Source: Malacoraja senta (Eukaryota). Taken from it: a stretch of DNA of 64,000 nt. The translations under genes were made by a program, and so were the position numbers. The notes beneath the pieces are model-generated. The model saw nothing but the letters and a program-made list of their open reading frames with translations. It did not search any database and was not told where the DNA came from. Positions 4,228 to 53,004 of the stretch are shown here, in pieces. Position 1 is the first letter of the stretch; every line of letters begins with the position of its first letter. The stretch covers positions 24,552,001 through 24,616,000 of the forward strand of contig CM075978.1 in assembly GCA_038087875.1 (NCBI GenBank), given 5' to 3'.

Positions 4228-5224
4228 TAGAAACATAGAAAATAGGTGCAGGAATAGGCTATTCAATCCTTCGAGCCAGCACCGCCATTCAATATGATCA
4301 TGGCTGATAAATCAGAATCAGTACCCTGTTCCTGCTTTCTCCCCCTGTCCCTTGATTCTGTTAGCTCTAAGAGCTATATCCAACTCTCTCTTGAATGCAC
4401 CCAGTGAATTGGCCTCCACTGCCTTCTGTGGCAGAGAATTCCACAGCTTCACAACTCTCTGGGTGAAAAAGATATTCAACATCTTAGTCCTAATTGGACT
4501 ACTGCTTATTCTTAAACTGTGACCCCTGGTTCTTAAACTGTGACCCCCTGGTTCTGGACTCCCCCAACATCAACATTTTTCCTGCATCTAGCCTGTCCAA
4601 TCCCTTAAGAATGTTATATTTCTATCCCCTCTCATCCTTCTAAATTCCAGTGAATATAAGCCTAGTCGATCCATTCTTTCATCTAATGTCAGTCCCGGCA
4701 TCCCGGAAATTAACCTGGTGAACCTACACTGCACTCCCTCAATAGCACGAATGTCCTTCCTCAAACTAGGAGACCAAAACTGCACACAATACTCCAGGTG
4801 TAGTTTCACCAGGGCCCTGTGCAACTGCAGTTGGACCTCCTTGCTCCTATACTCAAATTTTCTTGCAATGAAGGCAAACATGCCATTTGCTTCCTCACTT
4901 GCCTGCTGTGCCTGCATGATTACCTTCAGTTATTGATGTACAAGGACACCTAGGTCTCGTTGCACCTCCCCTTTTCCTAATCTGACACCATTCAGATTAT
5001 AATCTGCCTTCTTGTTCTTGCCACCAAAGTGGATAACCTCGCATGTATCCACATTATACTGCATTTGCCCACTCACCCAACCTATCCAAGTCGCCCTGCT
5101 GCCTCACAACTCCCACCTCGCAGCTCACACTGCCATCCAGCTTTGTGTCATTCGCAGAATTGGAGATGTTACATTTAATTCCTTCGTCCAAATCGTTAAT
5201 ATATATTGTAAATAACTGAGGTCC
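4228..5224 (-). mobile_element. CR1 3' fragment running into an assembly gap
   Basis: LEYCVQFWSP and RLGLYSLE motifs; AGAAACATAGAAAATAGG tail. Confidence 0.9.
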
Positions 5225-5424
5225 NNNNNNNNNNNNNNNNNNNNNNNNNNNNNNNNNNNNNNNNNNNNNNNNNNNNNNNNNNNNNNNNNNNNNNNNNNNN
5301 NNNNNNNNNNNNNNNNNNNNNNNNNNNNNNNNNNNNNNNNNNNNNNNNNNNNNNNNNNNNNNNNNNNNNNNNNNNNNNNNNNNNNNNNNNNNNNNNNNNN
5401 NNNNNNNNNNNNNNNNNNNNNNNN
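5225..5424. other. Assembly gap (200 N, true size unknown)
   Basis: Run of N; the two sides belong to unrelated elements. Confidence 1.
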
Positions 5425-6072
5425 CATCGTCCTCCCCTCACCCATTCCCTGCCCCAGCACCTACCCAGGTCATAGAGCAGCGCCAGGGCCTGGAACTCGG
5501 CCTGGTTCTCGTAGTCGGCCCGGCCCTGGCTGTTGGCGACCGAAGCATTCGAGGACCTGACTCTTGACGGAGCCGGGCTTGCTGTGCCGAGGGTGGGATG
5601 AGGGTGGCGGATGGCCGAGCCAGAGCTGCCCACAGAGCAGGAAGCAGAGGCTGTGCACCAGGATGGCGGCGGCCCCCGAGATGCTGGCACACCTTGACCA
5701 GGCCCCGGGCTTGGGCACAACTCCAGCCCTCAGCTCGGCCGCCGCCTGGGATCCAGTCCAGGCCCCGACCGCCCCATTCAGTGCGTCGATGGTGCCCCGG
5801 CGACGCCCCTTCCTGATTGACAGGAGTGGAGACCAATCTGCGTGGCAGTGACTGACAGCAATCTGTGCATGCGGTTTTTTAAAAACCATTTTAAAACCTT
5901 AATAACTTTTACAATATACCATTGATCGGAACGAAACTTGTTGCACTCACAGCACAGGCGAACGGTGAGCAAGCAGGCGAAAAATCGGAGTGCTATCACG
6001 TACCGTTTCTGCGCAAATAGAAAAACCGCGCAAACCGGAAGAGCACAAGATCAGAGTTTTAGTTATGTATAG
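5425..6072 (-). mobile_element. Non-autonomous Helitron (3' end lost in gap) with SAC3D1-like cargo
   Basis: 5815-6072 is homologous to 52720-52960 (5' terminal block GAGCACAAGATCAGAGTTTTAGTTAT). Confidence 0.8.
5465..5700 (-). pseudogene. Captured, frameshifted SAC3D1-like (SAC3/GANP domain) exon fragment ending at a phase-1 donor G|GTAGGT
   Basis: Translates across one frameshift as AAILVHSLCFLLCGQLWLG...SVKSQVLECFG / QGRADYENQAEFQALALLYDLG, resembling the SAC3D1 'Q.CF..L..CY......Q..FQ.L.LLYNLG' block (from memory). Confidence 0.55.
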
Positions 6073-8591
6073 CTGACTCCCACGTACACAACTTGCTGAC
6101 TATCTCCTAATCAGCCCTGGTCCATCTAAATGCGTGTATATCTTATCCCTCAGAATACTCTCTAGTAACTTTCCAACCACAGAATATTCTCAAGTCACTT
6201 TCCAACCACAAAGGAGGAAAGGAAATTCACCAGGATGCTGCTTTCGATGGAGCATTTCAGTTATGAGGAGAGACTGGAGAAGCTAGGATTATTCTCTATT
6301 GAGCAGGTTGTTAAAAGCAGACATAATTGCGTTACATAAAACTATGAAGAATACAGATGGGGAAGACGATAGGAAACTGCTCCCCAGTGATAGATAAAAC
6401 TAGAGGATATAGTTCTAGGGTAAGGGGGAAGAGATGTAGAAGGAATATGGGAAGGAGGTTCTTCACCCAGAGACAATTAAATACCTACTATGCACTGCTT
6501 GAGAGAATGGTTGAAGTTGGGCTGCTCTCAGAATTTGTGTTTGTACGAGCATTAGAATCATTCAGGCAAGGGGAGGTATAGATCAAGGGGTAAGATTGGA
6601 TTCATCTAGAAGCGTGCTTTGGATTAACCTAGAGGTAGGCATGGACAAGTTGGGCAGAATGGCCTTTTCCATTCTGTGCGGTTTTATGAAAGACATGTTG
6701 GTTAATTAACCATTAATCTGTAGATGAGTGATGGAATCATGAAGGAGTTCCTGGGAATGTGGGAAGAATTTAAAAATAGATTGGATGGGTATATGGACGG
6801 GAAAGGAATGGAGGGTTATGGTCTGAGTGCAGGTAGATGGGACTAGGGGGAAGTATTTTATTTTTAATAAAAAAAAATTAAAAAAAAATTAATGTTCGGC
6901 ACGGACTTGAAGGGCCGAGATGGCCTGTTTCCGTGCTGTTATGGTTATATGGTTATATGGTTATATGGTTATATAATGAAATGTGATTAATTTAAGAATA
7001 GTGTCAAATGGTGGCTAGATGGTTGGTGTATACTCCGTGGGTTTAAGGACCGATTTCCATGCTGTGAGACTCTAAATCAATATGTTAGTTCAAAATTATA
7101 TTTGAGTTTAAGCCTTTACATAGTTGCTTGATTCAGCAGTCAGGAATTTCCAGGAGTCTGAAAGCTAACATTAAGATGAATAAGGGACTGTTCGTAATTT
7201 TAATCTGCCTCTGTGACTCAGACCAACAGAAGCCACAGTAAATTGTTTTTAGTGAGCAAAATAAAGGACTCAATTGAGAAAATAACTTTATAGTTTTGCA
7301 GGCTTAGCAACAGCAATCTTTAAGCGAAGAAGTAGAAACCCTACCTTGTCAGACTCAATTTGAAATGGTATAATTTATTGAAGCAGTATCTTACAAATAT
7401 TCCCGTTCAACTCAGTATTCAGGCTATTATAACTATTTTGTTATTGAATACTTTTTCATGCATTCTGCCTTCCTTAATTCTGCTCCTATCCTAGACCCAG
7501 TATCATGACATCATTTTTAGATATGCTACTGTCCTTGTAATTAATCAGGTAAGAGAAATACAGAGATTATTTTGACTTTCACAAAGTGCATTGGAGACAC
7601 AAGAAACTGCAGATGCTGGAATTTGGAACAAAAATTAAAAAGCTGGAGGATCTCAGTGGGTCAAGCAGTATCCATGGTTTATCACTTTAAAGCCTCTACC
7701 TCCCCTCCCCATTGCCACCTGGCTCCATCTACCCATTATCTCCCTCCTTACCCTGGTTCTATCTATCGCCTGCTACCCCCTGCTTCACCCCTCCCTCTCA
7801 TCTCATTATACAGGCTATCTCCCCTCCACACTCTCAGTTCTAATACAGGGTCTTGTTCCAAAACATCAACTATCCATTTGCCTCCAGAGATGTTGCCTGA
7901 CCCGCTGAGTTCCTCGAGCAGTTTATTTTTTGCTCCAAAAATCTATTTTGGACCCCTTCCCATTTCTCCTCCAGATTCTGCACCTCAACAACATCAGCAA
8001 AAAAATAAATGCTGGGTTTCACATGTACTTTTGTATCAGCCAGTTCTACTACATGCTTGTGACATCTCCACTCTTTCTAATTTGTCACACTGAGGATGTC
8101 CAGAAATTCTAACTAACCTTTTGAAAGACTAAAATCTTTGTCTTCTACCTTAATTCACCTCAATTCTTTGAGGTATACCAAACTTTTTACACACTGAAAT
8201 CTAATCAGATCCTGACAACATTTGCCAATAACATATATTATTTTGCCAACTCTTCTATCTTCCCTGGATTCAAAACCACTTTCGTTCATCCAGTTATAAA
8301 TCCTGTCATGACTATTCCCACAATTTTGATCAGCTTCACATCTTCCACCTTTCAATCAATTTGAATTTACCTATTCAGCCTTCATTCCTAGATTTATACT
8401 AGACTAAGTGGGACCCGTTGGGTCCCATGTTCACATGGGAGGGCTGGTCCCCCAACGCAATATTCCACCTCTCCACCAATTCCAATATTGGTGGCCAGTG
8501 GGGGGGCTTTCTGGAGTGCTAGTATGGGTGTGGGCCGAAGGGACTGGGTTCCAGAGGGCTAGTATGGACATTGTGAGCTGAATGGATTCTT

Positions 8592-47339: not shown

Positions 47340-48168
47340 AGTCTTGGGAGGGTAGAGAGTGAGAGGGAGTGGGTAGAGAGGGAGGGGGGGGGGGAGGGAG
47401 AGAGGGTAGAGTGGGGGGCGGGGGGAGTGGGGTATAGTCAGGGGAGGGGGGGTTAGAGAGGGTGGGTGTGAGGGTAGATAGGGAGAGGGCATCTCCCTCC
47501 TCCACCCCTCCCCATCTCCCTCCTCCACCCCTCATCTCCCTTCTCCACACCCCCCCCCCAATCTCCCTCCTCAATTCCCTCATCCTCCTCCCCTCACTCC
47601 CATTCCCTGCCCCAGTACCTACCCAGGTCGTAGAACTGGAACCCAGCCTGGTTCTCGTACTCGGCCCGGCCTGGCTGTAGACTCCAGCCGTCAGCTCGGC
47701 CGCCGCCTGGGCTCCAGTGGGCTCGTCCCGGACCCAGGTTCTTCCTTCGTTCCAGCGGCGGCTTTTTCCGCCCCGGTCACGGCCCCATCACAAGCCCTGG
47801 GCTCGGCTCTCAGTCCAGCTCCAGCACCACCCTCCCCGTCGGGTGCCAGCAGCGGCCGCCACATGAGTGCGCTGGAGTGCCCCTCCCTCCCGAGTGTTCC
47901 GTCCTGCCTTGCGAGTGCATTGTGACGTCACTCTGTTTTTACGAGATGGGTGAGTTTTCGGGCTGTTTTTAAAACTTTAAACGATTAATAACTTCGGAAA
48001 TATAGGAGGGAATGCGACGGGAAGATGTTTATCGCCTCGACGGGAAAAATGTGAGTAGGGTTTGTGAAACTGGGAAGGCTGTGGCCTAGCATTTGGAAGA
48101 AAATAGGAATTAACAAGATATTCACACGCGCACACACACACACACACGACTTTTAGTATTATAGAGAT
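47340..48168 (-). mobile_element. Helitron-family copy with a deleted SAC3D1-like cargo (47581-47720); left boundary approximate
   Basis: 47581-47720 aligns with 5425-5530 and 5720-5757; terminus GACTTTTAGTATTATAGA resembles the other family members. Confidence 0.7.
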
Positions 48169-51367: not shown

Positions 51368-52959
51368 CTAGACTAAGTGCAGACCCGTTTGGTCTGCTCC
51401 CCCAACGCAATATTCCACCACTCACCTGGTCCCCCAACGCAACCTGTTCCTCCAGCGCAATATTCCATCACTCACGCATAGCCCCCAACTGCGCAGGCGC
51501 AGCTTATTTCCCCTAATCCCCCAGCACTCCCTCCCCCTCCTCTTCAGCCTCCCTCTTCTTTCCCCTCTCCTTCCTTCCCCCAATCCCTCCCTCCCTCTCC
51601 TTTCCCCTACCCTTAGTCACTCCCTCCCTCCATAACTCCTCTCCCCTCCCTACCCCCTCCTATCCCTCTATCCCCCACCTCCCCCACTCCTCACCTCCCC
51701 CACTCCTCACCTCCCCCTATACCCCTCCCCACTATCCCTCCTCACCTCCTCCACTGCCCTCCGTTCCCTCTATTCCCAACCCTACCTTCCCCACCCCCCT
51801 CCTCCCTCTATTCCTCCTCCTCCCCACTCTCCCTCCTCACCTCCCCCACTTTCCCCCCTAACCTCCCCCATTTTCCCCCCTCTCCCTCCCTACCCCCTCC
51901 TCCCCCTCAATCCCCTCACTGTCCCTCCTCACCTCCACAGGATCTTTCTCCTCTCCTCCTCCCCTCCCCCAATCCCTCCCTCTCCTTTCCCATACCCTCA
52001 GTCACTCCCGCCTTCCCTCCATAACTCCTCTCCCCTACCTACCCCCCTCCAATCCCTCTATCCCCCACCTCCCCCACTCCTCACCTCCCCCTATCCTCCC
52101 CACTATCCCTCCTCACCTCCCCCACTGCCCTCCTCTCTCTATTCCCCACTCCTTGCCTCCCCCACTCCCTCCCTCCTCTCTATTCCCCCTCCCTCACCAG
52201 ACATGAGACAGGAAAAAACAGAAAAAAGAGGAAGAGGTAGATTTCTCCGCGGATTTTGAAATTCGGCGAGGCCCCACCGCCGCTGCGAGGCTCCATTGCC
52301 GCGAGGCCCCACCACCGTCGCGGCCCCATCGTCGCGAGGCCTCACCGCCCCGGTCTCGATGCCGCCTGGATCGCCACATTGAACCCCGGACGGGGCCTGG
52401 CGGGTAGAAGCCCAGGTCGGACGAAGTGGCCGACGGGGCCCGCAGCTGGACACCACGGAGGCCGTGAAGTGGGCTCGCCTGCTCGGCACCACGGAGGCGC
52501 CCACAGACGCAGGCGAGTCCTGCCGGCGGAGCGTTATTGATGCTCACTCCGCTCCTTCAGCTTTATATTCTCCTCGCCGGGCGAGAGCGTTAGTGATGCT
52601 CACTTCGCTCCTTCAGCTTTATATTCTCCTTGCCTGGTGAGTCGGGCGCTGCCCGTGACTGACAGCGGACCTGGCCAATCAGTGCGGCGATGGTGCAGGG
52701 AGGGGCGTCGCTGTCCCAGTGACTGACAAGAGAGGAGACCAATCTGCATGGCGGCGACTGACAGGAGAGGCTACCAATCTGCATATGCACAGTTTTTAAG
52801 ATTTTTAAACCTTAATAACTTTTAAAATATACCATCGATCAGAACAAAACTTGTTGCCCTTGTAGCACAGGGGAATGGTGAGTAAGGTGGCGAAGAAACG
52901 TTGCGCTATCGCGTACCGTTTTTGCGCAAAACCGGAAGAGCACAAGATCAGAGTTTTAG

Positions 52960-53004
<45 letters not shown>

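Follow-up and report, generated by a model that had tools for sequence, protein, structure and literature searches.

We propose that positions 5425–6072 of the 64,000-nucleotide stretch of Malacoraja senta DNA analyzed here (the window) hold a dead, truncated copy of a non-autonomous Helitron that captured genomic DNA of the host gene SAC3D1 and amplified it, a reading to which we assign a probability of roughly 0.9. It is built on features read directly from the DNA, namely the Helitron termini, the copy number, the colinearity with the parent gene across an exon/intron junction and a series of deletions that leads from long to short copies. The features of the window, with the cargo assignments made by homology, are:

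5425–6072, minus strand: 5′ 648 bp of a non-autonomous Helitron copy of ~1.3 kb, with 76–88% identity to many copies genome-wide
5770–6072, minus strand: 5′ block of the Helitron backbone, to which 20 copies align with their 5′ ends and which is common to a Helitron with a different cargo at 52662–52967
5703–5769, minus strand: cargo part A, putatively a single 54-bp unit from the tandem array in SAC3D1 exon 1 (GAQA.AEPGARVVPEPRV in the parent protein)
5465–5703, minus strand: cargo part B, putatively the 3′ part of SAC3D1 exon 1, parent codons ~198–284 (211 of 260 columns identical)
5431–5464, minus strand: putative captured 5′ splice site, G followed by GTAGGT, and start of SAC3D1 intron 1 (29 of 33 aligned intron columns match parent locus L066 from position 1333 on)
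5225–5424, no strand: assembly gap of exactly 200 N that interrupts the Helitron; N runs of exactly 200 recur in the window and at other loci
8398–8460, minus strand: isolated 3′ end of the Helitron family, GGGACCCAACGGGTCCCACTTAGTCTAG then T
47550–47718, minus strand: putative second fragment of SAC3D1 cargo, consisting only of the repeat unit fused to the terminal ~70 bp of the exon, with the donor and a G-rich stretch behind them

The Helitron family and its copy in the window

Helitrons have a 5′-TC end, a 3′ hairpin followed by CTRR and no terminal inverted repeats, and they insert between A and T. The extent and ends of the present family were determined from 20 genomic copies (5′ ends) and 15 copies (3′ ends). 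Homology among the 20 copies extends over ~1.3 kb, and most of them start with TCTATACATAAC, which provides the 5′-TC terminus; the copies open with (T)CTATACATAAC, often behind a host A. At the 3′ end of the family (...ACTTAGTCTAG), 14 of the 15 copies carry a GGGACCC-AAC-GGGTCCC hairpin, ~7 nt reading ACTTAGT, and CTAG, in agreement with the hairpin and CTRR signature, and the host base behind CTAG is T, again in 14 of the 15. At the 5′ flank, an A precedes four unambiguous copies (L002, L006, L012 and L020) and a T or G others, and many 5′ ends adjoin microsatellites. The flanks of the compared copies are mutually unrelated, with no target-site duplication visible in them. In copies other than that of the window, the cargo is enclosed by the 5′-TC and hairpin-CTAG ends, as the sequence-only reading of this DNA had supposed from a 5′ block and the adjacent insert.

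Two further arrangements were seen at the 5′ end. In L005, L013, L015 and L019 it directly abuts the hairpin-CTAG 3′ end of another Helitron, forming head-to-tail arrays with the junction ...GTCTAG/TACATAAC, where the downstream copy is without its first four bases. In L006, L007, L009, L012, L014 and L018, an (ATCC)n or (ATCT)n microsatellite is found at the terminus, sometimes in place of the first 10–25 bases.

The genome contains at least 104 matches to Helitron_like_N (Rep). Several of them lie in uninterrupted open frames of 1400–1766 aa (e.g. G000:C3619:51176–51721, C4719:112731–113276 and C1:40977736–40978278), and autonomous Helitrons of this genome may therefore still be intact. A comparison of Rep-coding Helitron parts with the present family found only G-rich repeats in common and identified no autonomous element with the same termini.

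In the window, the backbone 5′ block is AT-rich with the terminus CTATACATAACTAAAACTCTGATC at 6072; the T of the usual 5′-TC is a G at 6073, and the remainder of the terminus is intact. The copy ends at 5425, the edge of the 200-N gap, so that only about half of the Helitron is present and its 3′ end falls outside the window; the sequence to the left of the gap is a different, unrelated repeat. The minus strand of 5425–5889 reads exactly as the sequence-only reading had described a GC-rich insert with two frames and a G/GTAGGT end: one frame of the strand gives AAILVHSLCFLLCGQLWLGHPPPSSHPRHSKPGSVKSQVLECFG, one frame of the insert reads AAILVHSLCFLLCGQLWLG...PGSVKSQVLECFG, and another reads QGRADYENQAEFQALALLYDLG, after which come G at 5465 and GTAGGT at 5464–5459.

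Other repeats surround the Helitron at 4300–5224 and 6073–6600, with ORFs such as ...NVDTCEVIHFGGKN... and ...ILRDKIYTHLDGPGLIRR, which we take to resemble pieces of LINE reverse transcriptase; a Pfam scan of the short ORFs in these two flanks gave no match.

Relationship of the cargo to SAC3D1

As judged by homology, the cargo is a fragment of the host gene SAC3D1. The GC-rich insert aligns with exon 1 of a SAC3D1-like gene of the skate Rhinoraja longicauda (XP_078252027.1) with 82% identity over 293 bp, and the alignment of window positions 5703–5431 with positions 1073–1365 of locus L066 runs straight through the exon/intron junction. At the protein level, the first window peptide matches the R. 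longicauda protein in 36 of 46 positions (residues 211–256, E 2e-17), and the second in 22 of 23 (residues 262–284, E 1e-13). Within part A, positions 5703–5750 are 83–96% identical to the repeat units of L066 (722–1021). Part B is decayed and differs from the skate gene by indels of 8, 11 and 1 bp, which produce the frameshift between the two window reading frames. The two donor bases GT, ahead of the 33 aligned intron columns, are also identical to L066, and positions 5425–5430 run on into G-rich sequence.

With Pfam, neither the frames of the window itself nor short pieces of it yielded a SAC3_GANP match. In a scan of the genome, PF03399 (SAC3_GANP; cut-off 27 bits) was found in three places only, at 33–40 bits, each time in a member of this Helitron family whose insert is longer. 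The three long copies read ...PWPLVHDFVMDRLRSVRQDMVSQRLGG.PAAAILQHSLRFLLCGQLWLG...EYKNQAEFQALALLY[DN]LG and cover HMM positions 71–179 of 289, with stops or frameshifts. For the better-preserved of these, a comparison with solved structures ranks SAC3 domain-containing protein 1 first (residues 161–238, with the alignment ending at LLYNLG), and the best match among 1.84 billion representative proteins is the R. longicauda SAC3D1-like protein (E 6.7e-30, 83% identity), with Mobula birostris SAC3D1 in third place. The peptide E values of 2e-17 and 1e-13 and the Pfam scores of the better-preserved copies bear out the SAC3D1-like origin put forward in the sequence-only reading. Given that the PF03399 match is partial and broken by stops and frameshifts, and that the window pieces have no Pfam match, the cargo is regarded as a gene fragment, not as a member of the SAC3/GANP family.

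The donor locus was read in R. longicauda because the parent gene was not found in the M. senta assembly. Two loci were examined, L066 and the chromosomal L081, and at both coding exon 1 starts with codon 1 and stops after the first base of Gly284 (Gly286 in the isoform of 446 residues at L081); the gene copy at L081 has the same exon/intron junction as that at L066. The exon ends ...CTCTACGACCTGG (CTGG) and intron 1 starts GTAGGTGCTGGCGCAGGGAAT, is ~4.4–4.7 kb long and ends ...CCCCCAG, with exon 2 resuming GT TCG GAT. The intron is in phase 1 and is placed immediately after LLYDLG, with the donor CTGG/GTAGGT. Both an intron of this phase at this site and an intron start like that of the window had been anticipated from the window alone, and the first ~30 bases of the parent intron match window positions 5464–5431.

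In the skate gene, exon 1 has about five units of 54 bp in tandem (L066 722–1021; L081 10238–10547), each encoding GAQATAEPGARVVPEPRV, and the number of units varies between Helitron copies and also between L066 and L081. The skate locus is flanked by two SINE-like repeats (L066 1–321 and 5600–5970), each of which has thousands of copies at ~90% identity in the M. senta genome, which sets the species of the window near the skates.

Searches of the M. senta assembly with residues 286–444 and 1–75 of the parent protein and with exon 2 DNA returned nothing at E ≤ 0.01, and the flanks of the skate gene retrieved only SINE-like repeats, at ~90% identity. That no intact SAC3D1 came up is more likely to reflect a hole in the assembly of a GC-rich region than loss of the gene.

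The cargo is without a start codon, without the C-terminal half of the domain (exon 2) and without an intact frame, and what it retains of the SAC3_GANP domain is incomplete; it is predicted not to be a working gene and to evolve like neutral repeat DNA. The only plausible activity would be passive, namely the scattering of a consensus 5′ splice site behind a GC-rich, exon-like segment. Of 53 sampled copies, 39 retain the consensus donor GGGTAGGTGC, and family members occur at low depth and on both strands in a poly(A) RNA run of another organism, two observations that would fit a use of some copies by the host, either through splicing to neighbouring genes, the copies serving as alternative first exons or as internal ones, or as a source of antisense or small RNAs acting on SAC3D1. 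We consider such use unlikely: no joint or loose end at the donor was seen in the ~6% of that other organism's run that was read, nor any use of the donor in two small, possibly RNA, contig sets, where coverage was likewise low and on both strands, and low coverage of both strands is what read-through of repeats would be expected to produce.

The transfer might also have gone in the reverse direction, the skate SAC3D1-like gene model having received its exon 1 from a Helitron, through exonisation or as an annotation artefact; the parent was indeed read from an automatic NCBI gene model, and one of its copies resides on an unplaced contig of 6.6 kb. This is very improbable, since (i) the chromosomal locus has the exon as well, and neither a Helitron 5′ block nor a 3′ end occurs there within 25.7 kb, (ii) 25 N-terminal codons of the exon are absent from the Helitrons, and (iii) the exon codes for the N-terminal half of a SAC3_GANP domain (233 bits) whose remainder lies in exon 2, and this half is conserved both in SAC3D1 of Mobula birostris and in the solved structure of SAC3D1. 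We retain SAC3D1 as the source and the Helitron as the recipient.

The Helitron copies pass from exon 1 into parent intron sequence and not into exon 2, and all 95 scored genome matches to the R. longicauda SAC3D1-like protein stop at or before residue 285. Intron sequence together with the constant absence of exon 2 excludes an mRNA-derived origin, and the cargo is predicted to stem from genomic DNA rather than from mRNA. In the 36 intron columns compared, the majority letters of the copies agree with the R. longicauda gene in 28. Beyond the first ~35–60 intron bases the Helitron tail is a G-rich repeat in which homology to the parent intron is inseparable from G-rich low complexity, the tail being 68–78% identical to the parent intron and 66–74% identical to unrelated G-rich regions; per 50 columns, identity is 0.62–0.86 with the parent intron and 0.44–0.74 with unrelated G-rich DNA.

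A processed (mRNA-derived) or duplicated SAC3D1 pseudogene that merely lies beside a Helitron end, the two not forming one mobile unit, would agree with the window taken by itself, where the 5′ block and the insert are visible and the 3′ end is missing. We find this hardly tenable, as the junction of backbone and cargo recurs in every copy examined, with the same 5′ and 3′ termini and in unrelated flanks, and as the donor is followed by intron sequence and never by exon 2. Finally, a chance likeness of GC-rich low-complexity DNA to SAC3D1, the insert being ordinary Helitron interior, would draw on the lack of a Pfam match to the window pieces and on a region that is GC-rich and then enters G-rich repeats common across the genome, but it is refuted and deserves practically no weight in view of the 293-bp alignment with the skate gene at 82% DNA identity, the two peptide matches, the longer copies above the Pfam cut-off, and an alignment that stops exactly at the end of the parent's exon and then enters the parent's intron.

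Deletion series, copy number and proposed history

Three long copies (L021–L023) are colinear with the parent from L066 position 559, at about codon 26 (...HRLEVA...), to position 1365 and beyond, and run through AVKEWRR, the 54-bp tandem repeat of exon 1 and the FVMDRLRSVRQD motif up to the donor; the junction between backbone and cargo lies after GTCCGCTGTCA. The window copy and most others have two internal deletions relative to this long form, the first of which leaves a single repeat unit (5703–5769), while the second removes the FVMDRLRSVRQD part. A still shorter form, in which the repeat unit is joined to the last ~70 bp of the exon, occurs at window positions 47550–47718 and in other sequencing runs, where contigs contain the same deletion joint (5533 to 5720). 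Comparison of these forms indicates that the window copy is an internally deleted derivative of the longer form, and that the original capture began near codon 26 and took in almost all of exon 1. The sequence-only reading had described a captured 3′ exon end with intron sequence, subsequently amplified; the capture across the exon/intron boundary and the amplification hold, and its limit to the 3′ end of the exon does not.

A second Helitron in the window (51426–52967, minus strand) has the same 5′ block (52662–52967) up to GTCCGCTGTCA, followed by an unrelated cargo, and a search of that cargo (52195–52662) against the SAC3D1 locus revealed no similarity. The different cargo may represent a second, independent capture. 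This element also has a G-rich tail, and within its internal segment of ~470 bp (52195–52662) a unit of ~60 bp is duplicated; the segment terminates in a donor-like CTG/GTGAGG.

In the 1.94-Gb genome, a first look yielded 4001 candidates with the 648-bp query and 1826 with the protein query. The 35-mer that spans the exon/intron junction, allowing ≤3 mismatches, occurs 518 times, and the reversed control 0 times, a number of near-exact junctions that agrees with the amplification expected from the window. The 44 distinct copies that were compared have a mean identity of 81% to each other and of 84% to the skate gene, and their majority letter equals that of the skate gene in 262 of 294 columns, values that speak for an old burst and for neutral decay since then.

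The same single change, GGTAGGTGC to GGTAGGTCC, recurs in a large proportion of the 35-mer matches, and the GGTAGGTCC donor variant apparently marks a distinct and numerous subfamily. Some copies have identical flanks (L002/L003 and L009/L010; G000:C14:9722697–9723377 and 9848475–9849155; C2:75686201 and C1:232892833), and others recur at a spacing of 3.5 kb on one contig (C535:11700, 15240 and 18781); their flanks and spacing imply that these copies owe their number to segmental or tandem duplication, or to redundancy of the assembly, rather than to transposition.

Sampled words of the 648-bp query are present in part in sequencing runs of eight organisms. In the runs of three organisms that were examined, contigs or reads cover the cargo region, and the family is consequently not confined to one species.

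We suggest the following history. An ancestral element would have taken up unspliced SAC3D1 DNA, from about codon 26 of exon 1 through the end of the exon into intron 1, the cargo being placed between the ~300-bp 5′ block of the element and its 3′ region. Uptake most likely proceeded via filler DNA or template switching inside an existing element, a route favored because the sister Helitron combines this 5′ block with another cargo. The chimeric element would then have been copied by rolling-circle transposition with Rep/helicase supplied by another element, and we infer that mobilisation occurred in trans. Internal deletions would have generated shorter subfamilies, which would make up most of the at least 500 copies, the window copy being a short form without the FVMDRLRSVRQD part.

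Comparison with known captures

Capture of gene sequence by Helitrons is a known route to exon shuffling and is documented mainly in maize and bats. The present family resembles the non-autonomous Helitrons of maize and of vespertilionid bats (Helibat) that carry gene fragments in its 5′-TC end, its 3′ hairpin with CTAG and its 3′ T, with A in the 5′ flank of several copies here, and likewise in an unspliced host-gene cargo that includes an exon/intron junction, in hundreds of copies and in subfamilies formed by internal deletion. It differs in its host, a cartilaginous fish that the shared repeats and the closest relatives of the cargo mark as a batoid, and in its cargo, exon 1 of SAC3D1. Chimeric transcripts are on record for the capture Helitrons of maize and bats, whereas the M. 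senta family is known here from genomic copies. With respect to SAC3D1 (SAC3/GANP, PF03399), the cargo is homologous to skate codons ~26–284, with FVMDRLRSVRQD in long copies and EFQALALLYDLG in all copies, but it would be only a fragment, neither a SAC3D1 gene nor a paralogue.

In the literature searched, we found neither a report of Helitrons capturing genes in cartilaginous fish nor a paper naming both Helitron and SAC3D1. The case is a clear but ordinary one of Helitron gene capture, a new example of a well-known process, and it leaves the understanding of how Helitrons work unchanged. It extends the known range of such capture by a well-defined case in cartilaginous fish that combines a parent gene, an exact 5′ capture junction and a long-to-short deletion series. 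For annotation it is also a warning: SAC3D1-like pseudo-exons, hundreds in number and equipped with good donors, can give rise to spurious gene models and SAC3_GANP hits, both in the M. senta genome and in those of at least some relatives.
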